A stretch of DNA of 64,000 nucleotides from Octopus sinensis (Eukaryota): positions 30,938,001 to 31,002,000 of the forward strand of contig NC_043001.1 in assembly GCF_006345805.1 (NCBI RefSeq), in the 5' to 3' direction. The notes below the pieces were generated by a model that did no database searches, had not been told where the DNA came from, and saw only the letters and a list, made by a program, of their open reading frames with translations. Shown piece after piece: positions 7,502 through 45,005 of the stretch (within the stretch, counting starts at the first letter, position 1; every line of letters begins with the position of its first letter). Made by a program: the position numbers and the translations under genes.

Positions 7502-7792
7502 TACTATATAGAGGCGGCGAGCTGGCAGACACGTTAGCACACCGGGCGAAATGCGTAGCCGTATTTCGTCTGCCGTTACGTTCTGAGTTCAAATTCCGCC
7601 GAGGTCGACTTTGCCTTTCATCCTTTCGGGGTCGATAAATTAAGTACCAGTTTCGCACTGGGGTCGATGTAATCGACTTAATCCCTTTGTCTGTCCTTGT
7701 TTGTCCCCTCTGTGTTTGGACCCTTGTGGGTAGTAAAGAAATATATATATATATAGATAGATATAGATATATACACACATGCACACACACAC

Positions 7793-11900: not shown

Positions 11901-14504
11901 TCCACTCACCAGGTACTGGCTAACCTGAAGTTATAGAAGATAACACCTTTCTAAAAGGCCACAAGGCGGAAGATGTCAAACCTGGAACTTCTTAAACATA
12001 AGGTTATGTTTGCATTCAGAGAGTAAATAATTTGGGAGAAACAACAAGCCTTGCTTAAGCCTTAAGCAGTCAAGCCTTACAGGATAATGACACAGAGAAA
12101 GCTGCTGGGTTCCATCTTCCTTTACCCCCATCTCCCCTTGATCCCTACTTTTGCAACTGGTTGCTATCATGCCATCAACACTCCGAGTCCTCCTCAGTCA
12201 CACATCTGTCCTCTTATCACCATCCCTGTTGTGTCCTGCCCCACTCCAACCCTGCAGTCCAATTCTAACCACTGCATTCAGCTTCCACTTCCCAGAATGT
12301 TGGCTTTCAGGAATTCCCTCCCTGTACATGTTTCTAAAGGGACATTAACTGTGTCAGTTTCATCTGACTGAAATGGTCTGCCTACAAAGACAGTAGGTTT
12401 GGCCTTTTCCTCTTGCATAATCTAACAGTAAAAAAACACTCCCTTGATTGCACAATGAAATAAGCACTTTCCTCTCTTCCCCCAAAAAACCCCAATTATT
12501 GCTAATTCTTTGTATTTTAAGTATTACAAGAAAAGCAGCTTCTGGTGGTACCTCAGCAGTCATCCTTATACTCACTGACTTGAGCTTGTTGTGTGTGTGA
12601 GTGTGGTATGTGTATAAATGTGTATATGCATTTGTATTTGTCACCTCCTGCCGTCATCACTTGACAACTGGTGTTGGTTTGTTTACATCCCAGTAACTTG
12701 AAAGTTCAGCAAAAGAGAGCAGTGGAATAAGTACCAGATTTAAAAAAACAAGTGCTGGGGTTGATATCAAAATAATGGGTGAATGATCTGCAGTTTGGTG
12801 ATTTAAAATATACTGATATTAAAATTTTGGCTTAAGCAGATGAATGACTAATTATAATTGTTAATAAGCTATGTTACTATCCCTTCCCTTTCAGCTATAG
12901 TCTTTTATTTATTTATTTTTACTCATTTTCAGTCATTATACTGTGCCCTTTCTAGGATACTGTTTTTTTTAAGGGTTTTAGTCACTCATATTGACCCTAG
13001 TATATATTTCATTCTGATACTTATTTTATCAACCACTATTTATCAAATGGCTAAGTGACAGTTTATACATGGCACCAGTTATTTATTTTTAACTACCCAC
13101 AAGGGGCTAAATACAGAGGGGACAAACAAGGACAGACAAACGGATTAAAACGATTATATCGACCCCAGTGCGTAACTGGTACTTATTTAATCGAACCCGG
13201 AAGGATGAAAGACTAAGTCGACTTTGGCGGAATTTGAACTCAGAATGTAACGGCAAACGAAATACTGATAAGCATTTCATCCAGCGTGCTAACGATTCTG
13301 CCAGCTTGCCACCTCGGCACCAGTTATTACACTGATAATTATAAACATACACACAGCCATTGGTTTCTTTATTGTTTTCATCTTCCAAAATTCTACTCTA
13401 ATAATATTGGTCACTCAAGACTGTAGCCGAAGATGCTTGTCCAAAGTGCTGCACACTTTAATCAAACCTGGTCCTCTGTGGGTGTGATGGATTAGACTGA
13501 AATCTTTTGTCAGCCATATCGAGTTTGACTGGCTTCCGTGCCGGTGACACGTAAAAGGCACCATCCGACCGTGGCCATTGCCAGCTTTGTCTGGTCTCCG
13601 TGCCGGTGGCATGTAAAAAGCACCATCCGATCGTAAAAAGCACCCACTACACTCATGGAGTGGTTGGCGTTAGGAAGGGCATCCAGCCGTAGAAACACTG
13701 CCAGATCAGACTGGGCCTGGTGCAGCCTTCTGGCTTCCCAGACCCCAGTTGAACCATCCAACCCATGCTAGCATGGAAAGCGGACGTTAAACGATGATGA
13801 TGATGATTACATGACTGGTTAGAATATTAAATAATTGTCTGATATAATTGTTAAAGCTATTGTCATATGTAATCCCTGCTTTTTTCATCCCTTCTCCAGT
13901 CCCCTAATCTCTTTGGCACACCTTCAATATATTTGTAAGTATTGATTACTTTGACCAAATACACTGCAATTTTTTTTTTTTTATAAGGGTGTGAGCTGTA
14001 ATGAATACAATGAGCTCCTACTTATTGTATTGATCCCATCAGGATTTTTAATTGAGAACCTAGAAGGACAAAACTAACTGCAACATTATACTACTTCCCA
14101 TTCCCTGCAGTCTTTGTTACTTCATCGACTCTGTATTTATTTATAAATATAAAATACCAAGCATTAATTACTCACATCAATGCCCCATTTTGTGCAGGCA
14201 TAGAAAATCTCTGTTCTTTATTCCATTTACTGGTAGCCATTTGCTTCCCTATTGATTGTTGTATCATTTTCCCTCTGGATTAAGTTATGGTTGTTTATGC
14301 TGTCTCACATTTTTATGTAATATTGGCTTTTATTTGTCTTGTATTTCCTTACAGATCCACAGATACATGAACAATAAGGACCAACAGAACAACCCCATTT
14401 AAATTTCTATATAAAAATACTTATTTTTGGATACTATCTTGCCCCTAAATCAATCTGTAGTTAACGTCACCTAACTCACTGGATGAGAGCCATGCTTAGA
14501 CTTG

Positions 14505-14815: not shown

Positions 14816-15315
14816 CTGTAGTTAACATCACCTAACTCAGTGCATGAGAACCGTGTTTAGACTTGCTTCTGCTGTCCTCTTTCTTTGCTCCCCTTTCTTT
14901 TATATTCAGGACTTGTTAGAGGGAACTGCTGTCAGATTACTTTGAAGTGGGACAAAGCAGATGCAGTTTGGTATTTTTTTAATTTTATTATTTCATATGC
15001 TATTCTTTGACCGAAGTTCTATTCACGAGTAATGATTATTGTTGTTGTTTTTGCTTAGCACCAACTCTGCTCTGGCCGAATAGTCTTATGACTACAAGCA
15101 TTCCATCCATGCCTATCCTTTCTTCTTGAAGTGATTGTGTATCTAGGACTACATTATCAAATATATCCCTCTCTTGTCAGGACAGCTGGCTATGATAGGG
15201 AGATTTGGCTGCTATTTCTGGTAGGTATAGCAATCATGTAATAGGCTCCCACCATGAATAATGGCTTTAATATATTAGAATAAAAACCAGATTGTACATT
15301 AGTATTCTAAGTACC

Positions 15316-15811
15316 TTAGATATTTGTCCTCATCTTGTTTGTTGTAAACACGTTTCAGTTGATATACCCTCCAGCCTTCTTCAGGTGTCTTGGGGAAATT
15401 CAAACCTGGGTTCTCGTTCCTAAGGTATTTTTCGATGTTATTATTATTAATATTGTTATTATTATTATTATTATTAGTGTTCAGGTCACTGCTTGGAATC
15501 GAACTTGGAATCTTGGGGTTAGTAGCCCGCACTCTTAACCACTACGTCATATGCCCACGGGCATATGGTGTAGTGGTTAAGTTTGATTCCAAGCAGTGAC
15601 CTGAACACTAATAATAATAATAAAAATAATAATAATAACATCGAAAAATACCTTAGGAATGAGAACCCAAGTTTGAAATTTCTCCAAGACACCTGATGAA
15701 GGCTGGAGGGTACATCAGCTGAAACGTTGTGTTAACAACAAACAACATGAAGACAAATAGCCGTCAAATGTAAATAATGTACAGAATTCCTCCTCTCTTA
15801 AATATAGAACT
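15316..15811. mobile_element. Palindromic tRNA-head/Penelope-tail element, copy 1
   Basis: Head-to-head arms around ATATGCCC-AC-GGGCATAT (centre 15557-15558); TSD GTATTCTAAGTACC 15302-15315 / 15812-15825; hammerhead motif 15688-15733. Confidence 0.85.
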
Positions 15812-16013
15812 GTATTCTAAGTACCATTTCAGTTCTTGGTATCTAGTCATGGTGATTTGATTAAATACAGTACCTTGTATTTTTTAAAGCTGACTATTTC
15901 ATTCACATTTTAGTTTATTTTCTAAAATTTAAAACTGTTATTGTTTCTGCTTGTTATCATTGTTTCGCTTGATCAAACATTTAGTATAACAGACATCATT
16001 GTAGCACTGTTCA

Positions 16014-16243: not shown

Positions 16244-17591
16244 GACAAATAACACTGTAAAAGTCTCAATATCACAGGTCTAAAAGACATTGCATAGAAG
16301 TATTTCAAGCCAGCTCTGCATAAATCAACATCTAACTTGAAAGTATTCCAAGTCTGCTCTGCTCTAGTAGACATTTGGTACGGAAGTGTTCCCAGTCAGA
16401 TGTTTGAGCTGATATCTAACTTGGATATATTCCAAGTTAGCTCTGCTGCAGCAGACACCTAACAAAGAAGTATTTCAAGTTACCTTTGACTAGGCATTTT
16501 ATTCTTTTGCTTGTTTCAGTGACTGGACCGTGGCCATGCTGGGGCATGGCCTTGAAGGGTTTTTAGTTGGGTAAATTGGCTTCAATACTTATGTTTTTTT
16601 TAAGTTTGGTACTTATTTTATCAATTCCTTTTGCTAAATTGCTCTGTTACAGAGACATAAATCAAAACTAGTTGTCAAGTGGTGGCGGACAAACACTCAC
16701 CCACACATACACAACAAGATTCCACACAGTTTCCATTTATCATATTCACTCATCAGACATTGGTTGGCCAGGAGCTAAAGTAGATGCTTGTCCAAGGTGC
16801 TGTGAAGTGGGGCTGAACCTGAAACCACATGGTTGTAAAGCAAACTTTTTAACCACATAACCATGCCTATAGAAAAATATAAATTAATGATGAATTGATG
16901 CTCTGTAAAGAGTAAAAAACCTAACATTTCAGATCTGTCCTTCTTCAGCTTTAATCCTATGGTTTCAAAATGACTGTGGTATTAACTCCGAATTAAGGCG
17001 TTGAGCTGGCAGAATCGTTAGCACGCCGGGCGAAATGCTTATTGGTATTTCGTCTGCCGTTACATTCTGAGTTCAAATTCCACCGAGGTCGGCTTTGCCT
17101 TTCATCCTTTTGGGGCCGATAAATTAAGTACCAGTTACGCACTGGGGTCGATGTAATTGTCTTAATCCATTTGTCTGTCCTTGTTTGTCCTCTCTGTGTT
17201 TAGCCTCTTGTGGGTAGTAAAGAAATAGGTATGGGTGATTCAATAGAAGTGATGGGAAGAGGAAAGCCTGGTGCATGAGGTGGTGTACAGTTTACAAGCT
17301 CAGAGGAACAGATGAAGACATGTCTGTGAGCTAATGATGATGAACCAGTTAAACCTCAGCATGTCAAATTTTGATCTATTCTTGACCATTTATTACAGTT
17401 TAATCCTCTAGATTTCAGATTTCTCTGTCAAATGTAATACTTATTTATTCACATTGCTTTGAATTAATCATGCATTATTTTGTAGCTTTGAGATTTTGAT
17501 GAGATACCTGTTAATTTTTAGAACGATATAATAGGGTTGGTGTGAGAGGTCAGACCTGGCCATTTTAAACATAAAACAAATAGAATATATT

Positions 17592-17813
17592 TATTTCTTT
17601 ACTACCCACAAGGGGCTACACACAGAGGGGACAAATAAGGACAGACAAACGGATTACGTCGACCCTAGTGCGTAACTGGTACTTAATTTATCGATCCCGA
17701 AAGGATGAAAGGCAAAGTCGACCTCGGCGGAATTTGAACTCAGAACGTAACGGCAGACGAAATACAGCTACGCATTTCGCCCAGCGTGCTAACGTTTCTG
17801 CCATCTCGCTGCC
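17592..17813 (-). mobile_element. tRNA-derived SINE family B (representative, TSD TAGAATATATT 17581-17591 / 17814-17824). Other copies about 7511-7743(+), 13085-13316(-), 16993-17230(+), 21214-21355(-), 22319-22745(+, tandem dimer), 47170-47390(-), 61488-61720(-), 62617-62848(+)
   Basis: A box TGGCAGAAACG, B box GAGTTCAAATT, core GCCTTTCATCCTTTCGGGGTCGATAAATTAAGTACCAG, 3' end TAGCCCCTTGTGGGTA(G/A)TAAAGAAATA. Confidence 0.85.
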
Positions 17814-18384
17814 TAGAATATATTGAATAGAATATATTGGCTGAATATAGCTGGTTTAAATGTGAATGGGTTTAAAATTCAAAATGACTTTATTGGGTGC
17901 AGACAAGACTGTATGGTTAAGAAGTTTGCTTCCCAAATATGTGGTCCTATGTTCAATCCTACTGCTCAGCATGCTGAACAAGTTTTTCCTTCTATGACCC
18001 TGGACCAACCAAAGATTTAGGAATGGATTTTATAGAGTGAAATTGAAAGAAACCCATTGTACCGGTGGCATGTGAAAAACATTTGAGTGAGGTTGTTGCC
18101 AGTGCTGCTGGATTGGCCCCTCTGCAGGTGGCACATAAAAGACTCCACTTGAGCGTGGCCGTTGCCAGTACTGCCTGACTGGCCCTGATGCAGGTGGCAC
18201 TTAAAAGCACCCACTACACTCTTGGAGTGGTTGGCGTTAGGAAGGGCATCCAGCTGTAGAAACTCTGCCAGATCAAGATTGGAGCCTGGTGCAGCCATCT
18301 GGTTCGCCAGCCCTCAGTCATATCGTCCAACCCATGCTAGCATGGAAAGCGGATGTTAAATGATGATGATGATGATGATGAATG

Positions 18385-19091: not shown

Positions 19092-19615
19092 TGGGACACT
19101 AAACTCTGCTTGCGAAGACCTGTTGAGGCAAGTGAAATCGGAATCAAAATCGAAATCAAATTTGATGATTGGCATCCGTGCTAGTGGAGCGCTAAGAGTA
19201 CCATACGAGCGTGATTGTTGCCAGAGCAACAAGCTGGCCTCCATGCTGGTGGCACCATTCGAGCGTGATCGTTACCTGTGTCGCCTTACTGGCACTTGTG
19301 CAGGTGGCAAATGAAAAAACATTCGAGCGAGGTCGTTGCCAGTGCTGCTGGACTGGCTCCTGTGCAGGTGGTACATAAAAGGCACCATTTGAGCGTGGCC
19401 GTTGCCAGTACTGCCTGACTGGCCCTTGTGCTGGTGGCACGTAAAGGCACCCACTACACTCGGAGTGGTTGGTGTTAGGAAGGGCATCCAGCTGTAGAAA
19501 CTCTGCCAGATCAGATTGGAGTCTGGTGCAGCTATCTGGTTTAATAGTCCTCAGTCAAATCGTCCAACCCATGCTAGCATGGAAAATGGACGTTAAACGA
19601 TGATGATGATGATGA
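19092..19615 (+). mobile_element. RTE-derived 3'-UTR retroposon (representative). Other copies about 168-420(-), 7097-7350(-), 13503-13805(+), 18050-18380(+), 23729-24200(-), 26118-26487(+), 32258-32600(-), 45045-45480(-), 54975-55322(+), 59088-59430(+)
   Basis: Shared GGAAGGGCATCCAGCTGTAGAAAC...CCAACCCATGCTAGCATGGAAAGCGGACGTTAAACGATGATGAT end and internal about 50-bp tandem units. Confidence 0.8.
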
Positions 19616-20333
19616 ATTCATTATCATCAAACTCTTAATCCTGTAATCAGTCTCTAGAATGTTTTCCACAAAAATGTTTTTTTCGCCTGAAATCAAATAT
19701 ATGATAAATACATTTCTTATATGTTATAACTTCTTCTTGAAGCACCTAATGATTAATAAGTTTTTTTGTGTGTGTGTGTGTTCTTTTCACTTCCTTTTTA
19801 AAGTTTTATATAAGTGTGTCCTTGAACCATTTAAATTCACAGGAGGTAGATTTCCTGAGATCGTAAAAGTTTATTATTGTCGTCGTTAACGCAGCAAGCT
19901 GGGAAGAATGTTTTGTGGCATTTCATCCATCTTTACATTTTGTATTCAAATTATACCATGGTCTGCTTGGCCTTTCATGCTTTGGGGGTTGATGAAATAA
20001 GTACCAGTTGAACACTGGGGTCAACATAATTGACTTACCCCTTCTCCCAATGTTACTGGCCTTGTGCCAAAATTTGAAACCACTATTATTCTTGTTGTTG
20101 TTGTTAAGGCAGCAAACTGGCAGAATTACTCTTTTACTTGTTTCAGTCATGTGACTGTGGCCATGCTGGAGCACTGTCTTTAGTCGAGCAAATTGACCCC
20201 AGGACTTATTCTTTGTAAGTCTAGTACTTATTCTATCAGTCTCTTTTGCCGAACCGCTAAATTACGGGTACGTAAACACACCAGCATCGGTTGTCAAGCG
20301 ATGTTGGGAGGACAAACACAGACACACAAAGAT

Positions 20334-20384
<51 letters not shown>

Positions 20385-20828
20385 ACGGGCTTCTTTCAGT
20401 TTCCGTCTACCAAATCCACTCACAAGGCTTTGGTCAGCCTGAGGCTATAGTAGAAGACACTTGCCCAAGGTGCCATGCAGTGGGACTGAACCCAGAACCA
20501 TGTGGTTTGTAAGCAAGCTACTTACCACACAGCCACTCCTACGCCTACATCAGACAAAATGCTTAGTGACATTTCACCTGTCTTTACATTTTGGGTTCAA
20601 ATTTCACTGAGGTCAACTTTGCTTTTCATCCTTTCAGGGTCGATAAAATAAGTACCAGTGTAACACTGGGGTCAATGTAATTGACTTGCCCACTTCTTTC
20701 AAAAGCTGCTGGCCCTGTGCTGAAACTTGAAACCATTATTATTGTTATTATTGTTTTTACTCGGAGAAACTACTTACCTGTAAAATGTGAATGTGGAAAA
20801 CTGACTAATGAATAACATGAAAATTTAA

Positions 20829-21498
20829 CATTATTTACGTTTGATGGATATTTGTCCTCATCTTCTTTATTGTTAACACAACGTTTCAGCTGATGTACCC
20901 TCCAGCCTTCATCAGGTGTCTTGGGGAAATTTCAAACCTGGGTTCTCATTCCTAAGGTATTTTTCGATGGTGTTATTATTATTATTATTATTGTTATTAT
21001 TATTCAGGTCACTGCCTGGAATTGAACTCTGAATCTTGGAGTTAGTAGCCCACACTCTTAATCACTATGCCATATGCCCGTGGGCCCACGGGTATATGGC
21101 GTAGTGGTTAAGAGCACGGGCTACTAACTCCAAGATTCCAAGTTCGATCCCAAGCCGTGACCTGAATAATAAAAGTAATAATAATAATAATAACAACATT
21201 GAAAAATACCTTACTTATTTAATCGACCCCGAAAGGATGAAAGGCAAAGTCGACCTTGGTGGAATTTGAACTCAGAACATAACGGCAGACGAAAGACGAA
21301 ATACCGCTAAGCATTTTGTCTGGCGTGCTAACGTTTCTGCCAGCTCGACGCCTTTACACTACACTAAAATATGACACCTGATGAAAGCTGGAGAGTATAT
21401 CAGCCGAAATGTTGTGTTTACAACAAACAAGATGAGGACAAATATCTGTCAAATATAAATAATGTACATAATTCCTCATCTCTTAAATATAGAACTGT
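20829..21498. mobile_element. Palindromic tRNA-head/Penelope-tail element, copy 2 (right arm interrupted by a SINE at about 21214-21355)
   Basis: Centre GTGGG|CCCAC at 21084/21085; A box 21097-21107, B box 21142-21150; TSD ATGAAAATTTAA 20817-20828 / 21499-21510. Confidence 0.85.
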
Positions 21499-23725
21499 AT
21501 GAAAATTTAATTCAAATTTTTTTGTAGGTATAGTATAAGCAGAGAGTTAAATAGTTTGCTTTGCAACCACAAAAGCCTAGGTTTGATCCCACACCATGGC
21601 ATGTTGGGCAAATGTAATTTTCTATAGATTTGAACTGCTCCATATCTTGTGAGTGAAATTGGGTAGACAGAACTATATAGAAGCCCATTGGTTGGGGAGG
21701 GGGATTATACTTATAATTAAAAAGTATATTCCTGTACATACACACTGTACCATACTAATCCTCTCTGAGAATTACATTTAGGATACATATGTCTATGAAA
21801 TGTTCTGCCACTTGTTAATCCAGGAACAAGTTATTCAGTTGATGAAACAACTGAATCCTTATTCTCAAACAACTGAAACCCATCTTCTTAGAGCGTATTA
21901 TGTTGATTTGTTCAACTCCGCAGTCTCACTGCAAACTTATAGATTGTAGCAATGAGAAAGATCATTATACCATACAGCAGGTGATATTTGCTTGCTGCTA
22001 ATAAACCTTCTCAGATTTGTTGTTGTCATACCACTGATAGCTGTTAATTATCTCTGACAATAATAATTACCTTGTAACTTAGTCTTTCTCTATTTACTTT
22101 ATCATTCCTAATTAATATTAGCTACATTGTTGATCTTAGAAATCTAGAATGACATAACACCTTTGTAAGAGATGTTTGTCAATGATTATGCTTTAATTTT
22201 TCTTAATACACATTTTAGTAAATGTATCTAGTAAGTATTCAATGAAGACTATATTAAGTTTTAATCAATATTCCTGACTAAAGTTGATGATTAAATGGTA
22301 ATATTTTAGTGTAGTGTAAAGGCGGTGAGCTGGCAGAAACGTTAGCACACCGGGTGAAATGCTTAGCGGTATTTCGTCTTACGTCTGCCGTTAAGTTCTG
22401 AGTTCAAATTCCACCAAGGTTGACTTTGCCTTTCATTCTATCGGGGTTGATTAAATAAGTACCAGTTATGCACTGGGGTCAATATAATCAACTTAATCCA
22501 TTTGTCTGTCCTTGTTTGTCCTCTCTGTGTTTAGCCCCTTGTGGGTAGTAAAGAAATAGGTATTTCGTCTGTCTTTACACTCTGAGTTCAAATTCCGACT
22601 AAGTCAACTTTGCCTTTCATTCTATCGGGGTTGATTTAATAAGTACCAGTTACGCACTGGGGTCAATATAATCGACTTAATCCGTTTGTCTGTCCTTGTT
22701 TATCCTCTCTGTGTTTAGCCTCTTGAGGGTAGTAAAGAAATAGGTAATATTTCAGTGTAGTATTGGTCACTTGTATTAATGTGTACAGTTGGAGCTAACC
22801 TTCTTAGTTTCTGTGTTCTTGCTATTCTTCATTGTATCATTTTCTTAATGGATCCACTGACTAATGACAATGGTGTCCTGATCAGAAACTTGGTTGTTTT
22901 GGAGACAACAATTTTTTTTGTTTTTTTCTATGTCCATAATAATAGTTTAATAAGCAATTACTAATGTGAAATAGGAATCTTCCATTTTATTCAGTTTTCA
23001 GTCTTTGATTGCTGATGGTGGTAATAGATCAATTAAATAAGAAAATCATTAGGCTAACTTATTGATCATGAATAATCATTGATTAGCTGTAACAATACCC
23101 TTTTTTGTACTTTCTTTCTGAAATGGCTTCATTTGTTTGTAAAAAAGAAAGAGAGAAAAAACCCCAACTATATTGTGTTACTTCTGGTGGATTTCTTTAT
23201 CCACACTTCCACCAATAAATAGTCAGCCATTCTAGTATAAAGTTGTTGAAAATGGTTGTTTTTTAAACTTCACTAATGGTATTTGTCCTTGTTTTATCCT
23301 TGTAGTATTGATTAGGTTTCTTTCCCAGGTCTTTTGTTGCCATATGAATTACTTTCATTCTTGGATAGAGGAGTAGAAATATGTTTAATAATGAACCTTT
23401 TCATTTTGTAATTATAGTGTGATGGGGAATGAATGTGTTGGTATAGATGTTTCTCAGTGCTTCTACTAGTGCTCACTAGATGAAGTGGTTTTTCAGCTTA
23501 TGGCTTTGTCTTGCTATCTCCCTATTGAGTAACTCAAGCTATTAAAGAAGGGAAATTTGTTTTTTGTTTTAAAGTGTACAATGTAAATGTAAAGGTAGTT
23601 GAGACTCATTAGAAATATTACATTTATCATAGATGCCTTCTCTTGCAGTGTATCTGAGTTCAAATTTCACCTGTGTTGATTGTCTTTTAGCCTTCTGAAT
23701 AGTTATAAAATACAAAACTATATTA

Positions 23726-25560: not shown

Positions 25561-25935
25561 ATAGGTGTAGGAGTGGCTGTGTGGTAAGTAGCTTGCTTAC
25601 CAACCACATGGTTCTGGGTTCAGTCCCACTGCGTGGCAACTTGGGCAAGTGTCTACTACTATAGCCTCGGGCTGACCAAAGCCTTGTGAGTGGATTTGGT
25701 AGACGGAAACTGAAAGAAGCCTGTCGTATATATGTATATATATATGTATATGTTTGTGAGTCTTGACAACTGATGCTGGTGTGTTTACGTCCCCGTAACT
25801 TAGCGGTTCGGCAAAAGAGACCGATAGAATAAGTACTAGGCTTCCAAAGAATAAGTCCTGTGGTCGAGTTGCTCGACTAAAGGCGGTGCTCCAGCATGGC
25901 CACAGTCAAATGACTGAAACAAGTAAAAGAGTAAA
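25561..25935 (+). mobile_element. tRNA-derived SINE family A (representative). Other copies about 4447-4858(+), 6455-6732(+), 6738-7070(-), 9746-10146(+), 20130-20548(-), 29124-29540(-), partials at 11585-11735, 16500-16870, 42060-42410, 44430-44700
   Basis: A box TGGCTGTGTGG, B box GGTTCAGTCC, internal (TA)/(TG) tract, tail (AAAAGAGT)n. Confidence 0.85.
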
Positions 25936-27164
25936 CTTAGATGACTCGTTAGACAAGATTATTAGTTCTGGTTTCTGGAATTCTAGGTAAATTAAATAAG
26001 ATGTTTGTCATATTTTTGCTTGGTTTTTATTCTTTTATTTGTTTCAGTCATTTGACTGTGGCCATGCTGGAGCACCGCCTTTAGTCAAGCAAATCGACCC
26101 CAGGACGCCTGTGCTAGTAGAGTGCCAAGAGCACCATCCGAGTGTGATCGTTGCCAAAGCAGCCAACTGGCTTCCATACCCATGGCACGTAAAAGGGCAC
26201 CATTCGAGCGTGATCGTTACCAACGTTGCTTCACTGGCACGTGTAAAAAGTGAAGGTCATTCGAGCGAGGTCATTGCTAGTACCGCCTGACTGGCCCCCG
26301 TGCCGGTGGCATGTAAAAAGCACCCACTACACTCTTGGAGTGGTTGGCATTAGGAAGGGCATCCAGCTGTAGAAACTCTGCCAGATCAAGATTGGAGCCT
26401 GGTGCAGCCATCTGGTTTGCCAGCCCTCAGTCAAAATCGTCCAACCCATGCTAGCATGGAAAGCGGACATTAAACGATGATGATGATTAAACCCCCATTT
26501 ACTCTAAAAATTACCAATCTCGTGCCGAAATTAGAAACCCTATTTCGAGTGTAGAAAATCATGGTAACCCCACCACCACCACCACCACCACCAAAAAAAA
26601 ACAAACACAACCTTAACTTCTTGTGGAAAGAATGACAGTAGTAGTGATGTGGAAGAAGGGAGAGGGAGGTGTATTGATTGGGCTTTGTTGTGGTGGTTGA
26701 GATTTACAAGCAGCTAGTTTAATGTAGCAGAGACCATTGTAACTGCATAAAAGAGACAGAAAGAATGTAGATTTATAAGCAGCCTATTAAATGAACAACT
26801 TTTATTTGAAATATTCTAGACTGTGCATGTCTGTAAATATCTGTCTACATGCATGTTTATGCATGCATTGTATATCTGCATTCTTCCCTAAAAATATGAG
26901 TAGCTGTCCAGGCATGTCTTGTCTGGGTTACATGTCTTTCAAGTAAAGCTTACACTCAGGTTTCAGATTGTTTTTTTTTTTTAATCTATTATAATCTAGT
27001 AATGTTTCAAGTGACACTTAGCATATGTCATTGTCTACATAATAATAGGGGGGTAATTACTGAAGTGCTGCTAAATGGTTTGTAGTTCAAATCATGTCTC
27101 AGCCATGACACTTTGTTATTAATTAAACAATGCACTTACTTTGCTTGCTTTAACCAACCTTATT

Positions 27165-27920: not shown

Positions 27921-28336
27921 AGGGTTTTCAGAGGTACAGCCCCCTAAAAATCCCCTGCGTATTATACTCAAGGGTGGACTATACTCGAGGATTTACGGTA
28001 TTAATTGTCACCTCACCACTTATATATTATTGTATGTGTAAGGATAAGTGGCATTTAGGTAAAACTATTTGCAACAATTCAAGTACCTAAATTTTTTAAT
28101 TACTTTTGGTTAAAATGATTCTGCTCATATATTTTGTTTTGATTTAACAAATACTAAATTTTATGATTTATTCCAAAGAAATTTTTTTTCTATTAATAAT
28201 GGCTCTCATTTGTGTTTTTGCTCTTTTTTTTTTTTTGTTTAGATATTTTCGGTATTTTGTGAGAATTAAGGTGATATCTGAACAGATCAACTCAGTCACT
28301 TACTCCTTCATTGGTTCATCTCCAAACTTACTTCCT

Positions 28337-29117
28337 ATGGAAGGAGGAAATAATATCTACACAGGCTCACCCGATTCTCCTCATTTTTCTCGTCGAATTT
28401 CTCGTCTCTCTGATGTAGATGACATAAAACGTGACCTCAGCAATATAACCGATGACTCTAATGATGACAGCTACCCACTGGCTCATATCAACCCTGTTTT
28501 TTCTTCGCCTTCGAACAGCATTGATTCTGGCTTCCAGTCTCCTTCCATTGAGTGTTTATCATTATCTTTTTCTCCAGACATCTCTCTCTCCTCAAACCAT
28601 ACTTCATCTTCTCAAAGAAAAGATTATCACAAATCAACAATAAATGGTAGCACTCAATATCCAAAACAGGAGCTTGATATTAATTTCGCTTCACCAGAGG
28701 GAAATGTCTCTTCTTGGACTACAAAGACTCCGTCAACTTCATTTATTGAACTCTCACTTAACGATTCCAGTTCCTGGAAGAACAATGTTGTCCCATTGGC
28801 TGACCCTACTCCAATGCAATGTTCAACTCCCCTATTACCACGTAACTTGAAAATCTTAGCAACCCCTCCAGTCACAAGCTGTTCAACAAACAATGTGGAA
28901 TTTATTTTAAATTCTCAAAGCTTCCAGTTATCTTCGTTGTCCTCTTCTACAACTTCTACAACCAATTCTGTTGGACTGTCACTTTCCAAACCGAAGGAAC
29001 TTGTAATAGAAATTCTAAAACCCGTTTCCTTCTCTGAGGCTCAAATATCACCACTTGCTCCCACAGCCTCATCTTTCCAGACTGCTACATTGAATAACCA
29101 ACCTAAAATCCAGACTA
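28337..29117 (+). CDS. FOXM1: FoxM1-like forkhead gene, first identified coding exon (exon acceptor at 28242/28243, putative ATG 28337); Ser/Pro-rich N-terminal region
   Basis: T-rich acceptor ...gtttag ending 28242; ATG GAA GGA (MEGGNNIY...); donor A|GTAAGT at 29118; phase 1 matches next exon. The frame is open upstream to the acceptor, so an upstream coding exon cannot be excluded. Confidence 0.8.
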
Positions 29118-29123
29118 GTAAGT

Positions 29124-29540
29124 ACTTTACTCTTTACTCTTTTACTTGTTTTCAGTCATTTGACTGCGGCCATGCTGGAGCACCGCCTTTAATCGAGCAA
29201 CTCGACCCCGGGACTTATTCTTTGTAAGCCCAGTACTTATTCTATCGGTCTCTTTTTTGCCGAACCGCTAAGTGACGGGGACGTAAACACACAAGCATCG
29301 TTTGTCAAGCGATGCTAGGGGGACAAATACAGACACACAAACACACACATATATATATATATACACATATATACGACAGGCTTCTTTCAGTTTCCGTCTA
29401 CCAAATCCACTCACAAGGCATTGGTCGGCCCGGGGCTATAGCAGAAGACACTTGCACAAGATGCCACGCAGTGGGACTGAACCTGGAACCATGTGGTTGG
29501 TTAGCAAGCTACTTACCACACAGCCACTCCTGCGCCTATA
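29124..29540 (-). mobile_element. SINE family A copy starting about 6 nt after the FoxM1 5' splice site
   Basis: Reverse complement of the family A consensus; tail begins right after GTAAGT at 29118-29123. Confidence 0.85.
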
Positions 29541-30886: not shown

Positions 30887-31100
30887 TTTATTATTATTAT
30901 TATTATTATTTATTATTATTTATTATTATTATTATTATTTATTATTATTTATTATTATCATTATTATTTATTATTATTATTATTATTTATTATTATTATT
31001 ATTTATTATTATTATTATTATTTATTATTATTATTATTTTATTATTATTATTATTATTTATTATTATAATTATTATTATTATTTATTATTATTATTATTA

Positions 31101-31133
<33 letters not shown>
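30887..31133. repeat. (TTA)n/(TTTA)n microsatellite abutting the forkhead exon acceptor
   Basis: Direct reading. Confidence 0.95.
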
Positions 31134-31138
31134 TGTAG

Positions 31139-31306
31139 ACTTTGGGTAGCAGCCAGTTCAACAAGCGACCTCCATTCTCTTATGTGAAGTTAATAGAAAA
31201 TGCACTTAACAGTCGTCATGATAAACGCATGACCTTAAAAGAAATCTACCGATGGATTGAAACCAACTATCCTTATTACAGCAACACTACAAAGCTTGGA
31301 TGGAAG
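31139..31306 (+). CDS. FOXM1: Forkhead domain exon, helices 1-2 (TLGSSQFNKRPPFSYVKLIENALNSRHDKRMTLKEIYRWIETNYPYYSNTTKLGWK)
   Basis: Canonical RPP(F/Y)SY...MTLKEIY.WI...(F/Y)PY....GWK motif, close to FoxM1 (KRMTLKDIYTWI...KPGWK); tttgtag acceptor, AAG|GTTAG donor, phase 0/0. Confidence 0.95.
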
Positions 31307-31591
31307 GTTAGCTCCCCTTTGCGCTTTGAAAACTGTATATTTTGGGCTATATTGTTATGTTGAGTATATCCTTAGATTATTTACTAAAATTCTATGTATA
31401 GACAGATGTGAGCACCTTTTCTGTATATAGAGTATTTATGCAGTTTATCTTTGTGTATGGAAAAACGTGCAGTTGGCTGAATTGGTTTCTGTCCTATGTT
31501 GGGATGTTATCAGTAAATATGCATTCACTTTAACTATCCACAGAGACACTTCTTTTAAACCTACTATCACATTGGACTTGAGTAAATAAAT

Positions 31592-33560: not shown

Positions 33561-33813
33561 AATTCAATTCGCCATGATTTATCTACCAACAAATGTTTCG
33601 TTCGAGAACCAACTCGTTACTATGGTTCTCACTGGAAATTGGTTTCAACTGCTAAAGACACGGTTTCGTCATCATCGTCATCATCGTCATTGTTGTCATC
33701 ATCATCATCATCATCGTCTTCATCATCAACGTTATCAACAGCAACTTCGTTGTCATTACCATCATCAGTGTTAACATCATATTCATCACCCTCATTATCA
33801 TCTGTTGCCACAG
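33561..33813 (+). CDS. FOXM1: Forkhead domain exon, recognition helix and wing (NSIRHDLSTNKCFVREPTRYYGSHWKLV) followed by a poly-Ser tract
   Basis: ttttatag acceptor; continues GWK|NSIRH; FVRE...S.W as in FoxM1; G|GTAAGT donor at 33814, phase 1. Confidence 0.95.
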
Positions 33814-34221: not shown

Positions 34222-35239
34222 AGATAGAGTGACCCTAGAATATTACACCAGACTAAGAAAAATATGGCAGTCTGTACTCTCCTCTTACGACTGGACAATA
34301 TTCCACAGTGCAGTTACAGTTCTAGTGCTGATTCCATACTCAACTAACCTGTAGAAGAAATCCACTCCATAGACATTAAAGCCCATAAGATTCTAACATA
34401 AACTGCAAATCTCCACTAAAATAATGATATCGACTGGCTTTACCTAAGAAGAAATAAAGTAAATAGGGGGTTGAGATCATTGCAGACAGCCTTTGAATGT
34501 CACAGTCTCTCTCAGACAGCACTTGCTAAACAACAGCAGCAAAAATAAAAACATTAACTTAGTGCCAAGAAGTGAAGAAAACAATATCTCAGAAAGTATT
34601 CTCTTCTTGATGATCTCCCATACAACCCCAAATCAGCCAGGTTAGCATACCCCAAATAAGACCTGGAGGTGAAAATCTCAGTATGCCAAAAAAAAAAATG
34701 ACTATGTTTAGGTATGTTTCTCATAGACTTGAAAAAGATAGTAAAACTGACATGAAGTGAAGCCTCTCTTGGACTTGTGGCTGCTACATCACATCACACT
34801 TCAGAGGCAATCTAAGGACAGGAGATTGCTACTAAATACCTAATTAACAAAAATGAAGCCCTTGGAGTTCTAAGAGGTAATCATAAATGTACATTATGTC
34901 ATATTTCTGTGGAAGACATAACACACACGTGATTAGCAGCTGCCCAAAAATGTCATCAAAGTACTACCTCCCTATGTGACATGATGTTACAAAAACAATA
35001 TATAATGCCATTTGGAAAAAAGACTGTCCTGGAATAAATGTAGAAAATCCCCGTTATTGAATATATACACATATACCAGCACAAGGAATACAGGTGGAAT
35101 ATTCCCATCAAAACATCTGTTAAGTGTAAGCATGACAAGGTTAGATATAAGACAGACAAGAAAAAATATGTACCATCATAGAGGTCAGCTGTCCTGCTAA
35201 TGTGAATATCTCTTTGAAAATCAAACAGAGAGAAGATAA
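34222..35239 (+). mobile_element. Decayed R4/Dong-like (RLE endonuclease) LINE, left part
   Basis: EYYTRLRKIWQS...IDIKAHKIL...NNDIDWLYL.R...RGL; CTLC...EDITH/VISSCP...YYLP..HD..K.IYNAI; WNIPIKT...IIEVSCPANVNISLKIKQREDN; stops and frameshifts present. Confidence 0.8.
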
Positions 35240-35266
35240 TAATAATAATAATAATAATAATCAATT

Positions 35267-38200
35267 CTTTTTTATTGGCCACAAGGGCTGACACGCATGA
35301 TTACATAAAGGGACAAGACAGGACGAAAGGTTACAAAGGGTTTTGTCCGTTTGTTAAAAAAATCCGTGTAAAAAACTTTAAAGCAATGATTATTAAAAAC
35401 AATGAAAAACTCCCAAAATGGGGAGACGTCTCGAAATGTTCCCGGTGGAGAAAACCCTACAAAAGCCAACGGGAGCCTGGTCAAAAAAGGGGGTGTAGAG
35501 AGTCCCCTTTCTTCTCCTTTTACATTACCTTTTTCTTTGAAATCACAGGCGAAACCTGAGAACTGGTCCATTTATACAGGCCAGTCTCGCACAATTCACC
35601 CACCTTTCATAAAACTTGCTATCGGACAGCACTTTCCTCTCTAACCTCATCTTCCTTTTCAAGTGAAACTTGAAAAAGTTGATGAGGCCTTGACCAAAGA
35701 GGAAAGTGTCTGACTTTAGCCCTTTCAAACGAGTCCACCACACGACTTCTTTCGCCACAGCCACAAGGCACAAGAAAACGGCCTCGCCCTCCTTGTTAAA
35801 GGAGGTCGGCGGGGCAATCTTCACTATGGATTCGGCCGATAGTCGGATCCGTCCTACACGTGACAGTAGCTGTTCGACATAAACCCATATTTCAGCAATA
35901 CTCGGGCACTGGACGAGTGCGTGCAGAACGGTTTCGTCGTCCTGGCAACACCTCGGGCAGGCCCGGCTGACGGCACTTCCGTGCCGGTAGAGTTTATCTC
36001 GAACAGGCAGAGCCCCTCGGTAGCACTGCCAGGCGAGAGACCTCTGGAAATTATCCATCGGCCCCGGCCCGAAAGTCCTCCCGAACAGACCGCTCAGTTC
36101 GTCGTCTTCAACGCCTAGAGTTTCCCCGAGAACGTCGTCGCATTTTTCCTCCACTAACCCTCTATAGAACGCTAGAGTGGAGCTGTAACCGACCGCATTG
36201 CCCGCCTGCGGAGGGCGGAGAGGGCTTGACGGCACTCGAGGTGCCAAGCGCCCTTTCTCGGTCTACGTTTGATCCAGGTCTGCAGCTCCGTCAAAGAGAC
36301 GAGCTGCGGAAAATCGCGTCTGACAAAAGACGACCACACCTGTTCACCGTCTAGGAAGCGCTTGAGATGCCGCAGCCTGAGCGCATGTCTGCGCAACAGC
36401 AACCACGGCATTCCAAGGCCTCTGTTCAGCGGTCGTTGACAGCAGATGGATCGCCTGACCAGTGGCACCTGACCCTTCCACAAAAAGTCGAAGAGCAGGC
36501 GTACCAGCTTGGCCAACCAGCGGTCGGGACAAGGGACGACGGTCAAGCGGTAATAGATGACGGATGCGATGTACGCATTCGCCACCTCCGCTCGACCTTT
36601 CAGGGACAGCTTCCTCTCGGCCCATTTCTGGGTGAGACGTGCCACCCTGCTCGTCACCTCTTCCCAGTTCTTATCCACCTGGAGGTCCGGACCGAACCAG
36701 ACCCCGAGCAGTTTAACGGGTCCGTCTGTCCAGCGCCCTACGACGCTGTTGGACGGCATGGGCTTGCCTCTCCAGGTGCCCAGTTGCAAGCCCACAGACT
36801 TTTCCGCGTTAATCTTTGCCCCTGTCACCGCTTCGTACTGGTTTAGCGTCTCGCCAATCAGGCCAATGTGCCTGTGGCTCGACACCACCATGGTGACGTC
36901 GTCGGCATAAGCAGACACGCTGTTTCCGCCTCCTAGATCGCGCGGGATGCCCCTCAAAGCCTCCAACTTGCGCATAATGGCTCGAGAGTCAAAATGTACA
37001 AGAGGGAGGAGAGAGGGCATCCTTGGCGGACCGAACGCGAGATGTCGAACGGTTCCGAAAGGTGACCGTTCACCCGTATCACCGAGCAGATGTTGCTGTA
37101 TAAAGCAGCGATCCACCCGCGGAAGACTGGACCGAAGCCGGCTGCCCTGAGGACAGCTGCCAGGTACCGATGGTCGACCCTATCGAAGGCTTTACTCTGA
37201 TCCAAGTTGATCAAAGCCCCACCCGCGCCAGCGTCGTTACCCACCCTCTCTATGATGTAGCGCATGAGATGGAGGTTGTCGTGTATCGACCTGGTCGGCA
37301 CGGCGCATGTCTGCGGCCCGCCGACCAGCTTGTCCACGACAAGCGCCAATCTCTTGGCTAGCACACTTGGCCAAAATCTTCAACTCTGCATTGAGCAGAG
37401 TGATGGGCCGGAAATTCCCTATAACGTCCCCCTTGTTTGAGTCCTTCTTTAGCAAAGCCACCACCCCTCGACAGACAAAAGCGGAAATTCTCCCGTTTTG
37501 CTGCCAGTTGCAGTAGACGTTTGCCAACAGGTCCGCAACAAGTCTGGCATCGAAAAGTAAAGCTCGTAGGGCAGACCATCCAAACCCGGCGATCTACCTC
37601 TCGTGCAACTCTTCATCGCTTCCTGTACTTCCCAGGCAGATATCGGTCCTTCGCAGCACTCTGCCTCGCTGTCCGAGAGTTGCGGCAGTCCGTCCAGGTA
37701 CACACCGAAATCTGCACCGTTGGTGTCCGTTCCACCGCTCGTCCCAAACAGTTGAGCAAAGTGCCGCTGAAGCACCGTACACATCTGCTTCGGTTGGGTA
37801 ACCTCGCGCCCGTTCTGGTCCACCAAAGACCGAATGGTTGCTTTGTTGCCTCGCTTCGCCTCCGCCACGCGGGCCCATCGAGCGGCTCCTAGTCCCTCCC
37901 CGCTTAGCGAACGTGCCTTAGCTCTGACAACGCAGCCTTTGTGTTTGGCGTCGAAGTGTTGGTCGAGGGCCAACCCTGCTGCCGCCGCCAACACGTTGGT
38001 CGCGATGCCAGTGTCAAGAGCCTCGTCTAGTTTCTTACTAATCCCGCTCTCTCTTCCTACGTTCAATAGCTAGAGTCTTACTATACCTAATCGACTCTAC
38101 TCTAATGCTCTCTTGAGGGCAAACCACCAGTTGTTGTTGATGTTGCCCCCGTGAGCGCCCGCTTAACTAGTAAACTAATCCGGTCTCTGTAAGCTTTGCA

Positions 38201-44840: not shown

Positions 44841-45005
44841 AGCCTCCTTTGATCTTACCTCGCCCTAATGTAGCACCTCAAGCTTATGCCTTAATTCCCA
44901 TACACACCAATAATCTGACACTTCAGAATCCCTCGACTATGTCTACTCCTCTTATTATCCAATTACCAACAATTTCAACTACAAATCCAGTCAAAAACTG
45001 TACAG
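44841..45005 (+). CDS. FOXM1: FoxM1-like coding exon (EPPLILPRPNVAPQAYALIPI...)
   Basis: ttttttag acceptor, G|GTAAGT donor, phase 1/1; RRK|EPPLILPR...YALIPI resembles the FoxM1 RRKMKPLLPR..YLVPI motif, supporting the M subclass. Confidence 0.85.

Follow-up and report, generated by a model that had tools for sequence, protein, structure and literature searches.

The window analysed here is the whole of a 64,000-nt stretch of Octopus sinensis DNA (NC_043001.1, 30,938,001-31,002,000) at the FOXM locus. It contains three palindromic insertions that we read, with a probability of roughly 0.5, as copies of a non-autonomous, SINE-like retroposon of coleoid cephalopods, about 283 nt long, that was dimerised by priming from both nicks of its target, as in Penelope-like elements (PLEs). 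Movement through RNA is supported by the Pol III boxes, the fixed 3' end, the variable TSDs and the unequal termini of the element, and the presence of one TSD around each whole dimer supports the origin of each palindrome from one integration. This is a real element and probably a PLE-dependent SINE-like family.

Searches with BLAST and nhmmer identified a single non-coding family of ~283 nt, whose six arms in the 64 kb form three head-to-head dimers. Neither search found a monomer of the family in the window, nor any copy of its tail there beyond the six arms. The original prediction had placed three copies, all of them head-to-head dimers, at 15316-15811, 20829-21498 and 45988-46776, and this was borne out. 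About 15 copies of another SINE lie in the same window and all are monomers; dimerisation is therefore specific to the ~283-nt family and is not a property of the region or an artefact of assembly. The parts of the three dimers are as follows.

15302-15315, no strand: copy 1 left TSD, GTATTCTAAGTACC, a perfect 14-nt direct repeat with 15812-15825
15316-15557, minus strand: copy 1 left (inverted) arm, c1L (family alignment, inverted repeats, nhmmer E = 3e-79)
15558-15811, plus strand: copy 1 right arm, c1R (nhmmer E = 7e-83)
15812-15825, no strand: copy 1 right TSD, GTATTCTAAGTACC, the repeat of 15302-15315
20817-20828, no strand: copy 2 left TSD, ATGAAAATTTAA, a perfect 12-nt repeat with 21499-21510
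20829-21084, minus strand: copy 2 left (inverted) arm, c2L (nhmmer E = 2e-89)
21085-21498, plus strand: copy 2 right arm, c2R (inverted-repeat search, BLAST, family alignment)
21499-21510, no strand: copy 2 right TSD, ATGAAAATTTAA, the repeat of 20817-20828
45976-45987, no strand: copy 3 left TSD, TTATTTGTTTAA, a perfect 12-nt repeat with 46777-46788
45988-46184, minus strand: copy 3 left (inverted) arm, c3L (nhmmer E = 2.5e-66, model positions 44-265)
46185-46526, no strand: copy 3 central private palindrome, 342 bp (inverted-repeat search; 140-nt arms, 91% complementary)
46527-46776, plus strand: copy 3 right arm, c3R (nhmmer E = 9e-70)
46777-46788, no strand: copy 3 right TSD, TTATTTGTTTAA, the repeat of 45976-45987

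The inverted arm of copy 1 has a complete head, stops ~53 nt before the end of the tail and is separated from the TSD by three unexplained nucleotides (TTA). Its partner c1R has the full tail, with the end GAACT(GTA), and an internal deletion of 30 nt in the head; the first three nucleotides of the TSD, GTA, can be assigned equally well to the element end. The symmetry centre falls between 15557 and 15558, and the arms overlap there by the 8 nt CCCACGGG. In copy 2, c2L likewise has a complete head, ends ...AAATAATGT and lacks the last 34 nt, and c2R has the full tail together with an insert at 21212-21375, a reverse-oriented fragment of an abundant unrelated SINE that stands in place of 32 nt. 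The copy 2 junction, ...CCCGTGGG/CCCACGGG..., is a gap-free palindrome, and its inner inverted repeat pairs 20971-21084 with 21085-21198 with 0 nt between them.

Copy 3 is the most elaborate at its centre. The arm c3L stops 27 nt before the end of the tail and has lost ~43 nt of the head between GCCC and CAACATTCC; c3R keeps the full 3' end GAACTGTA and a head that is complete apart from a 7-nt deletion, with 42 nt deleted inside its tail. Between the arms lie two mirrored halves of ~165 nt (46185-46350 and 46362-46526) around an 11-nt centre, each half adjoining the 5' end of one SINE arm. This central sequence is unique in the window, and its halves, at 88-91%, are comparable to the SINE arms; in our reading, either the template extended further 5' or a sequence was captured, and this stretch was copied into both arms. 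Copy 3 is situated between FOXM exon-like matches, and copies 1 and 2 may lie upstream of the FOXM gene. The best match to the FOXM exon protein was a 1.1-kb Logan contig, at 88-91%.

Each whole dimer is bracketed by a single pair of perfect direct repeats (14, 12 and 12 bp in copies 1, 2 and 3), in agreement with the 12-14 bp that had been predicted. With 100 offsets allowed, only ~1e-5 perfect 12-mer flanking pairs are expected by chance per locus. The claim that each palindrome arose in one insertion has stood, because, besides the single TSD, the gap-free centre of copy 2 leaves no room for an internal duplication, and because private features recur in both arms of a dimer, a CAC indel in copy 1 and a mirrored 165-nt extension in copy 3. 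Two independent insertions at one spot, or an artefact of assembly, would agree with the star-like arm identities (84-91%), which are no higher within dimers than between loci; sequence similarity alone is therefore no proof of a common template. However, no second TSD pair exists at any dimer, no base is left over at the centre of copy 2, and three loci in the window share one architecture, which two further species also show. The arms, moreover, are 84-90% identical and so are not artefactual duplicates, from which a difference of 10-16% sets them apart. We regard this as the least credible of the explanations considered.

Inverted arms of ~250 bp with a flanking duplication bear a superficial likeness to a long-TIR MITE, and a TIR MITE with a TSD of fixed length had been named in the original prediction as a competing identity. 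Nevertheless, a non-autonomous DNA transposon with long TIRs, of the MULE, foldback or MITE type, is highly improbable. The termini are not equivalent, since one of them falls short by 27-53 nt and its stopping point varies from copy to copy; the length of the TSD varies too. The Pol III boxes lie within the arms and face outwards from the centre, and a 5'-truncated monomer with its own duplication occurs in squid, as described below. We know of no DNA transposon superfamily with a TSD as long as 12-14 bp.

The unit consists of a Pol III-type head, the predicted (AAT)n spacer, a short CORE/Ceph-like motif and a 3' module of ~110 nt. The head is of a degenerate tRNA type, in which a 5-nt leader, CCCAC, is followed by box A and box B. 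The consensus box A, TGGCGTAGTGG, fits TRGCNNAGTGG; the box B-like sequence is GTTCGATYC, and AGTTCGATTCC matches GGTTCGANNCC at 10 of 11 positions. In the consensus the boxes are ~49 nt apart, a tRNA-like spacing near the 5' end. Only the three right arms (c1R, c2R and c3R) retain the A-box pattern, and four of the six arms (c1L, c2R, c2L and c3R) retain the B-box pattern; the remaining instances are mutated, deleted or missing. In copies 1 and 2, each arm has its inner end 13 nt upstream of box A, which is where Pol III would be expected to start. The element had been called tRNA-headed, and as far as the box A and box B motifs go this is correct. ARAGORN, however, found no tRNA in the head, and none of the copies had a tRNA match in Rfam at E <= 10; on visual inspection, the resemblance to a tRNA is limited to the D-arm and T-loop regions. 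The description is therefore a motif-level statement.

A single head begins (G)CCCACGGGCATATGG and has only an imperfect palindrome of 8-10 nt inside it. The hairpin ATATGCCC-AC-GGGCATAT, with which the head had been supposed to begin, is a self-complementary 18-mer formed at the junction of the copy 1 arms and not a part of the monomer.

At the other end of the unit, the family alignment gives the same terminal sequence, GAACTGTA, on the right arm in three of three copies, and poly(A) is absent from both ends of all three octopus dimers; on both points the original prediction was accurate. There is no TTTT on the sense strand of any arm, except in the foreign insert nested in c2R, and the first T4 lies 19-69 nt downstream of the arms, so RT must start internally on the RNA. 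The 3' module comprises a small hairpin (GGCYR...YRGCY), an A/C-rich stretch, a terminal hairpin with the predicted stems AGATGAGG ... CCTCATCT, and a final ~18-21 nt. It is conserved between the octopod and decapodiform lineages; the small hairpin was also predicted independently by RNAalifold, and two double changes in the squid copy preserve its pairing. Diagnostic strings of the element had no match in the literature searched, and two of its DNA patterns returned nothing from metagenome, viral and prokaryotic-genome collections.

The inverted arms are where the mechanism can best be judged. The last nucleotides are missing from all three, as had been claimed; the stated range of 35-50 nt was not exact, the shortfalls in the family alignment being 53, 34 and 27 nt in copies 1, 2 and 3. 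These outer ends are three different points, spread across 26 nt with no single site, and all of them fall within the loop of the predicted terminal hairpin, that is, in the stretch between AGATGAGGA and TCCTCATCT.

A sequence covering the FOXM locus of a distantly related decapodiform cephalopod (L001, from ENA ERZ21867824) provides an outside comparison. At 15263-15808 it carries a homologous head-to-head dimer with a 12-bp TSD, TAAATAGTATCA, whose inverted arm has a truncated 5' end and stops 40 nt short at its 3' end; the target of this insertion was a Ceph-like SINE (L001 15110-15262). A 5'-truncated monomer with its own 12-bp TSD, AAATAAAACAGA, lies at 12505-12575, and it ends, with ...AATTAATTCTC, at exactly the nucleotide where the inverted arm of the dimer has its outer end. 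That the inverted arm in squid should end exactly where an independent monomer has its 3' end points to a second defined start site for RT and, thus, to priming from the second nick. In the ~125 kb sampled from ERZ21867824, copies of the element were seen in L001 only. In cuttlefish, one locus (L003 17791-17958) has two short copies of this 3' module in inverted orientation, which brings the sample to a small total of 3 + 1 + 1 dimers and three monomers or relics from three species. No direct tandem or pseudo-LTR arrangement was seen at the five dimer loci.

We propose the following course of events. A monomer RNA would be transcribed by Pol III and would read into the 3' flank. An RT/endonuclease, presumably a Penelope-like enzyme with an RT and a GIY-YIG nickase, would nick the two target strands 12-14 bp apart, and both 3'-OH ends would act as primers. 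RT would begin internally on the RNA, either just after ...GAACTGTA, so that the arm carries the tail, or within the terminal-hairpin loop, so that the arm is tail-less. The two cDNAs would converge on the 5' ends of their RNAs and be joined head to head: bluntly in copy 2, through the self-complementary 8 nt CCCACGGG in copy 1 and after the shared 5' extension in copy 3. Fill-in would then leave one TSD around an inverted dimer with a tail of ~27-53 nt on one end only, which is the structure observed. Each insertion is then an inverted repeat of ~250 bp, and would yield long dsRNA if it were transcribed through.

The same partner could also have produced the dimers from one nick, if the cDNA, on reaching the 5' end of the RNA, snapped back, primed itself, recopied the element and was joined to the upstream target end. 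Self-priming has been proposed for the junction palindromes of PLEs (PMC3846280), and two of the centres would suit it: that of copy 1 could be a cDNA ending ...CCCGTGGG-3' that folded onto its own CCC, and the 11-nt non-palindromic centre between the mirrored extensions of copy 3 resembles the remnant of a hairpin loop. The palindrome of copy 2, however, has no spacer, and the self-complementary 18-mer arose at the junction and did not exist beforehand as a hairpin of the head. The cDNA fold-back favoured in the original prediction also does not easily explain the squid inverted arm, as an end shared with a monomer is expected of a second RT start and not of a random stop; in addition, PLE protein extends both strands in vitro (PMC11167929). 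We consider self-priming from one nick unlikely, and priming from both nicks fits the data slightly better.

A palindromic RNA that read through a whole dimer and was retrotransposed as a unit would have a fixed right end and, through 5' truncation, a short and variable left arm within a TSD, which is the classic picture of truncated retroposition. This is very unlikely. The three dimers have different centres (copy 1 an 8-nt overlap, copy 2 a blunt join, copy 3 a private insert of 342 bp), truncation never reaches beyond the last 27-53 nt in any of the three copies, and in squid the inverted arm has its outer end where a monomer has its 3' end. Furthermore, the internal Pol III boxes can yield monomer RNAs only, and a perfect hairpin RNA of ~500 nt would be a poor template for RT.

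Parallels come from the literature on PLEs. PLE insertions typically include an adjacent inverted copy within one short TSD (9, 10 and 8 bp), and the inverted copy was 37 bp shorter than the direct copies (PMC3846280); a tail of 30-40 bp is found at one end only (PMC3846280, PMC8557442). Head-to-head junctions are palindromic, and unrelated sequence has been captured between the repeats (PMC3846280, PMC8557442). Purified PLE protein cleaves and extends both DNA strands, and starts RT at two internal RNA sites that are a tail apart, with no target homology (PMC11167929). The insertion anatomy of the cephalopod element matches these published features (PMC3846280, PMC8557442, PMC11167929). An inverted head-to-head copy and a direct copy share one TSD in three of three octopus dimers and in the squid dimer, like the head-to-head inverted copy that Penelope/Poseidon, Neptune and Naiad carry at the 5' end within one short, variable TSD. 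The tail is on one end, and the short arm lacks 53, 34 and 27 nt in octopus and 40 nt in squid; endonuclease-positive (EN+) PLEs likewise have an inverted copy shorter by ~30-40 bp and a tail at one end only. They also share with the cephalopod element an inverted junction that is palindromic or shows microhomology, with occasional foreign sequence between the repeats, as well as AT-rich targets and the lack of poly(A) (PMC3846280, PMC8557442, PMC11167929). Unlike EN+ PLEs, the cephalopod element has no RT/GIY-YIG ORF, pseudo-LTR tandem or hammerhead, and it has a Pol III-type head instead of a pLTR promoter; its TSD of 12-14 bp somewhat exceeds the 8-10 bp known from rotifer PLEs.

Octopus genomes contain many recently active Penelope families (PMC13282606). 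The autonomous PLE whose presence had been anticipated was not encountered: the 64-kb window has no such element and no RT or GIY-YIG ORF with a matching end, no PLE was found in the fetched loci, and none was met in the ~125 kb sampled from ERZ21867824. A regular expression for the GIY-YIG motif, an approximate pattern that provides a lead only, had no match in six-frame translations of the window, L001 and a further locus, L002. Rfam likewise returned no hammerhead ribozyme at E <= 10 in four loci. The tail sequence CTGATGA...GAAAC was considered as a PLE hammerhead and rejected, both on the negative Rfam result and because helices I and III cannot form when it is threaded by hand; CTGATG/CATCAG is a local hairpin of octopus that is not conserved in squid. 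The hammerhead is not universal in PLEs, being absent from Naiad and most Chlamys elements (PMC8557442). With no PLE, no tail homology and no hammerhead found, the term Penelope-tailed is thus one of analogy in insertion architecture: of the original claim of a Penelope tail and mobilisation by a PLE, the insertion anatomy has held, whereas the tail homology and the RT/GIY-YIG partner were not found.

An ordinary SINE mobilised by an APE-type LINE (for example RTE or CR1) through its 3' hairpin could form dimers if twin priming on two RNAs were frequent. SINE bodies and tails are often derived from LINEs (PMC5786205), LINEs do occur in the window, and variable TSDs of 12-14 bp together with a fixed, tail-specific 3' end lacking poly(A) would suit a stringent LINE-SINE pair. 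The LINE at 35.3-39 kb was considered as a partner, but it ends in (ATT)n and has nothing in common with the tail of the element. The ~15 copies of the other SINE in the window include no dimers. A full inverted duplication, a tail of 27-53 nt at one end and starts with 0-2 nt of primer homology are all features of PLEs and, to our knowledge, have not been described for SINEs mobilised by LINEs. A LINE partner is accordingly doubtful. As a separate observation, the best matches to the RT of the window LINE were short JGI contigs, at 76-83%.

By the usual definition SINEs parasitise LINEs; if the present reading is true, a Pol III-headed family that relies on PLE machinery would bring in a third class of partner. 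Sm-alpha of schistosomes, which bears a hammerhead, is the sole partial precedent known to us. We tentatively suggest, though we hold it somewhat less probable than the converse, that a coleoid-wide SINE superfamily parasitises PLEs and not LINEs, and that its insertions record PLE integration and plant perfect inverted repeats of ~250 bp. Integration by PLEs is poorly understood; work on the inverted repeats and tails has so far relied on long elements, which are difficult to assemble, and on a single in-vitro system. Because the cephalopod element is so short, its insertions would keep a complete record of the reaction, namely priming from both nicks, two RT starts and head-to-head joining. 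A 283-nt passenger with both junctions, both 3' ends and the TSD would then be a convenient natural read-out of the PLE mechanism. Were the partner an ordinary LINE, the finding would shrink to an unusual SINE with frequent twin priming.

The inverted repeats could also matter to their hosts. Those of PLEs give rise to dsRNA and siRNAs in Drosophila (PMC3681739). The transcript of copy 1 has a predicted fold of -292 kcal/mol (z = -31.6), and it is plausible that such insertions, if transcribed, would seed dsRNA hairpins in introns. Cephalopods are known for heavy RNA editing and, if our reading is true, inverted repeats in their genes would be potential substrates for ADAR (A-to-I editing) or for siRNA production.

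Among other known systems, L1 twin priming, in which both 3' ends of a staggered break prime RT (reportedly described by Ostertag and Kazazian in 2001), likewise involves converging cDNAs inside one TSD. There, however, the inversion duplicates no sequence and poly(A) is present, whereas here the whole element is in both arms. With no A-tail at either end and a full element in each arm, L1-type twin-primed retroposition was rejected. The CORE/Ceph SINEs of cephalopods also have a tRNA-type head, and the body motif that follows the spacer of our element, CCTTAGGAATG (in c3L, CCTTGGGAATG), invites comparison with them. In its c3L form, AATACCTTGGGAATGAGAACC resembles the Ceph/CORE signature CCTTGGGAAAG, a comparison made with the 11-nt string quoted in the source; the RTE-like half of the Ceph domain, in the form given there, is related neither to the conserved 3' module nor to the tail of our element (PMC5786205). 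No description of dimeric insertion of Ceph-SINEs was found in the literature, a search whose scope lay outside Akasaki 2010, Repbase, Dfam and SINEBase.

Several short elements are believed to rely on PLE machinery and to have a 3' end in common with an autonomous PLE: Chlamys MRC1 (PMC8557442), the non-LTR retrozymes of animals (10.64898/2026.07.22.740005) and the short Penelope elements of Heliconius (PMC6685494). Unlike the cephalopod element, they have no tRNA-type Pol III head and are mostly arranged as head-to-tail repeats, and their homology to a partner has been demonstrated, whereas the cephalopod element is likened to PLEs by its architecture. Sm-alpha and Sj-alpha of Schistosoma are, like the cephalopod element, short, non-coding and apparently transcribed by Pol III, and they carry the hammerhead, a motif typical of PLE repeats (PMC6765202). 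In Sm-alpha the hammerhead is active and the copies form tandem arrays, whereas the cephalopod element has no hammerhead and is present as dispersed inverted dimers.

The three element loci of the original prediction were confirmed in the window, and a repeat search placed a single perfect direct repeat around each:

15302-15315 and 15812-15825, GTATTCTAAGTACC, direct repeat of copy 1
20817-20828 and 21499-21510, ATGAAAATTTAA, direct repeat of copy 2
45976-45987 and 46777-46788, TTATTTGTTTAA, direct repeat of copy 3

Given the base composition of the window and allowing 100 offsets, the chance of a flanking 12-mer match is about 1e-5 per locus. BLAST and an nhmmer profile search of the 64 kb recovered exactly six arms of the family and no monomers. 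The arms differ by 10-16% and are therefore not assembly duplicates. A different, abundant tRNA-type SINE of the window (GGCGGCGAGCTGGCAGAAACGTTAGCACGCC...GAGTTCAAATTCCGCC...), probably an octopus SINE, provided an internal control for dimerisation. All of its roughly 15 copies (7509-7700, 13180-13314, 16995-17232, 17587-17814, 22298-22750, 61399-62846 and others) are monomers, so dimerisation is a trait of the element family and not of the region or the assembly.

The unit, about 283 nt in the alignment of the six octopus arms (A1), reads from 5' to 3':

CCCAC, leader
box A TGGCGTAGTGG and box B AGTTCGATTCC, head
(AAT)n, spacer
AATACCTT(A/G)GGAATGAGAACC, body motif
GACACCTGATGAAGGCTGGAGGGTATATCAGCTGAAACGTTGTGTTAACAACAAACAAGATGAGGACAAATATCCGTCAAATGTAAATAATGTACATAATTCCTCATCTCTTAAATATAGAACTGTA, 3' module

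The putative assignment of the head to Pol III is based on the presence and spacing of the two boxes and on where the arms end, 13 nt upstream of box A in copies 1 and 2, the expected site of a Pol III start; neither ARAGORN nor Rfam recognised a tRNA in the head. TTTT is absent from the sense strand of all arms; a run of four T first occurs in the flank, at 19-69 nt. All three right arms share the terminus GAACTGTA. The left arms stop after GACAAATATC (copy 1), AAATAATGT (copy 2) and GTAAATAAT (copy 3), without the last 53, 34 and 27 nt, respectively, and a predicted terminal hairpin, AGATGAGGA...TCCTCATCT, has all three of these end points in its loop. Later damage comprises head deletions in the right arm of copy 1 (30 nt) and the left arm of copy 3 (about 43 nt), a 42-nt tail deletion in the right arm of copy 3, and a fragment of the abundant SINE (21212-21375) nested in the right arm of copy 2. 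This fragment is 91% identical to 22298-22461, 0.9 kb away, and the two have in common a 20-nt 5' extension, ATATTTTAGTGTAGTGTAAA, missing from other SINE copies; the pair may belong to a subfamily or have arisen by local duplication or conversion.

The central structure differs from copy to copy. Copy 2 is a gap-free palindrome, ...CCCGTGGG abutting CCCACGGG..., with 0 nt separating the arms, and in copy 1 the arms overlap by a nearly self-complementary 8-mer, CCCACGGG. The self-complementary start of the head proposed originally (ATATGCCC-AC-GGGCATAT) is this overlap, and hence a junction and not a feature of a single head. Copy 3 has at its centre a palindrome of 342 bp (46185-46526) that is private to it and occurs nowhere else in the window; the halves of this palindrome each adjoin a SINE 5' end and flank an 11-nt centre. 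A single insertion per dimer, as first suggested, is favoured because each dimer has one duplication pair, with no space for an internal one in copy 2, because both arms of copy 1 carry a private GAACACTAATAA where the remaining four have GAATAATAA, and because the arms of copy 3 have a mirrored 165-nt extension in common. Identity is 90, 84 and 88% within dimers and 84-91% between them, a star-like pattern that is uninformative on event number; in old copies it fits arms identical at birth, without being proof. We put the probability that the octopus copies are single-event retroposed dimers at roughly 0.9.

The window is AT-rich eukaryotic DNA (36-40% G+C) and carries a cephalopod FOXM gene, with these exon-like matches:

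28271-29161, + strand
31154-31312, + strand, forkhead-domain exon
33561-33665, + strand
44852-44965, + strand, weak

Among named sequences, FOXM of the cuttlefish Acanthosepion pharaonis is the closest to it; a Logan contig from a nearer relative shows 88-91% identity. Copy 3, between exon-like matches, is probably intronic. The first exon detected is 7-13 kb downstream of copies 1 and 2, which may be intronic or intergenic. If read through, copy 1 would give a transcript with a predicted fold of -292 kcal/mol (z = -31.6); inverted repeats of Penelope-like elements (PLEs) have been documented to give rise to dsRNA and siRNA (PMC3681739).

Several other repeats were seen in the window:

30888-31133, (TTA)n microsatellite, 246 bp, ending 20 bp upstream of the forkhead-domain exon
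35240-38976, - strand, LINE antisense in a FOXM intron, G+C-rich (53%), with frameshifts, APE endonuclease, RT and zf-RVT domains, an (ATT)n terminus (35236-35261) and a possible ORF1 at 39256-39969
41084-41674, - strand, 196-aa ORF resembling the C-terminal part of a LINE reverse transcriptase (no Pfam match at E <= 0.01), a second LINE remnant with no relation to the SINE tail
58320-58359, telomere-like interstitial repeat (CCCTAA)7
19251-19451 and 59122-59275, short tandem arrays of related 64-67-bp units (...GAGCGTGGTCGTTGCCAG..., ...GAACGTGGCCGTTGCCAC...), which may be parts of another repeat family
25855-25935 and 26026-26106, inverted repeat of unrelated sequence, 81-nt arms, 94%
43076-43180 and 43256-43360, inverted repeat of unrelated sequence, 105-nt arms, 76%

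At the protein level the first LINE is closest to short JGI metagenome contigs (76-83%) and to one Herbaspirillum-labelled MAG entry, the latter probably host contamination.

DNA pattern scans of three public collections (metagenome, viral and prokaryotic-genome) returned no further copies of the element. A distant FOXM match led to a decapodiform ("squid") FOXM locus (L001, ENA ERZ21867824), whose FOXM exon is 63% identical to a cuttlefish-like sequence and 48% to the window. Relatives were found there and at a cuttlefish FOXM locus (L003):

L001 15263-15808, head-to-head dimer within a 12-bp duplication, TAAATAGTATCA
L001 12505-12575, 5'-truncated monomer of about 70 nt with its own 12-bp duplication, AAATAAAACAGA
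L001 6148-6220, module relic, E = 1e-9
L003 17791-17958, short inverted module pair with no discernible duplication
L003 44721-44785, single module relic

Counting the octopus copies, the three species together have five inverted dimers and three monomers or relics. No further copies were present in another 105 kb or so of ERZ21867824. In the squid dimer the right arm has a tRNA-like but different, degenerate head, and the inverted arm, which has lost about 38 nt by 5' truncation, stops 40 nt before the end of the right arm, at ...AATTAATTCTC, exactly where the squid monomer ends. In an alignment including the squid copy (A2), this dimer and the octopus element have in common a module, CACCTGA.GA.GGC..GAGG...AAACGT.GTG..AACAACAAA..CAAGATGAGGACAAA, and the terminal hairpin stems, AGATGAGG/CCTCATCT. 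A small module hairpin, GGCYR/YRGCY, predicted independently by RNAalifold, is preserved in the squid copy despite two double changes; its conservation is suggestive only, as a single independent lineage is involved and 57 of 500 shuffles were equally good. The target of the squid dimer is the 3' end of a Ceph/CORE-like SINE (L001 15110-15262; ...CTTGGGAAAGGTATTGAACC...GGTTAAATAGTATCA), inside which its duplication falls. Several L001 gene calls (e.g., 19479-19931 and 20031-20243) have in-frame stop codons in the standard code and look like artefacts of a prokaryote-style caller with an alternative code.

A long-TIR transposon is contradicted by the unequal termini and the duplications of variable length, and retroposition of a palindromic RNA by the differing centres and the squid monomer. 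Given the geometry, each arm must be cDNA-sense with respect to the two 3'-OH ends left by a 12-14-bp staggered break. Published PLE biology provides the remaining pieces. An adjacent inverted copy within one short duplication is frequent in PLE insertions, this copy is about 37 bp shorter owing to a 30-40-bp 'tail' at a single end, and the head-to-head junction is marked by palindromes, with unrelated sequence sometimes captured between the repeats (PMC3846280; PMC8557442). A purified PLE protein cleaves and extends both strands, and its RT starts at two internal, tail-separated RNA sites with no target homology (PMC11167929); primer/start-site homology in the octopus copies is 0-3 nt. This leads us to propose PLE-type copying from both nicks: a Pol III monomer RNA would be the template, reverse transcription would start after GAACTGTA at one nick and in the hairpin loop at the other, and the two cDNAs would be joined at the RNA 5' ends.

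It is also possible that the cDNA snaps back on itself, as the original prediction had it. Such folding agrees with copy 1 and with the 11-nt centre in copy 3. It is a poorer explanation of the palindrome without a spacer in copy 2 and of the outer end of the squid inverted arm, which coincides with the 3' end of an independent monomer. As for the Penelope-tailed reading itself, the insertion architecture matches that published for PLEs, but no autonomous PLE was found in the window or the relatives' loci examined, no homology of the tail to a PLE and, in any copy, no hammerhead ribozyme, and no tandem pseudo-LTR arrangement is present. The main rival is a stringent LINE of the APE type in which twin priming would be unusually common. 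We consider PLE-type machinery the probable source of the dimers, and give our specific model, in which both nicks prime, an even chance.

Non-autonomous PLE derivatives are known, namely Chlamys MRC1, the animal retrozymes and the short Penelope elements of Heliconius, and schistosomes have a SINE-like Pol III element that carries a PLE-type ribozyme. What appears to be new, relative to the literature searched (Repbase, Dfam and SINEBase being outside its scope), is a SINE-like family that has a tRNA-type head and no hammerhead, is conserved across coleoid cephalopods and inserts as PLE-style inverted dimers.
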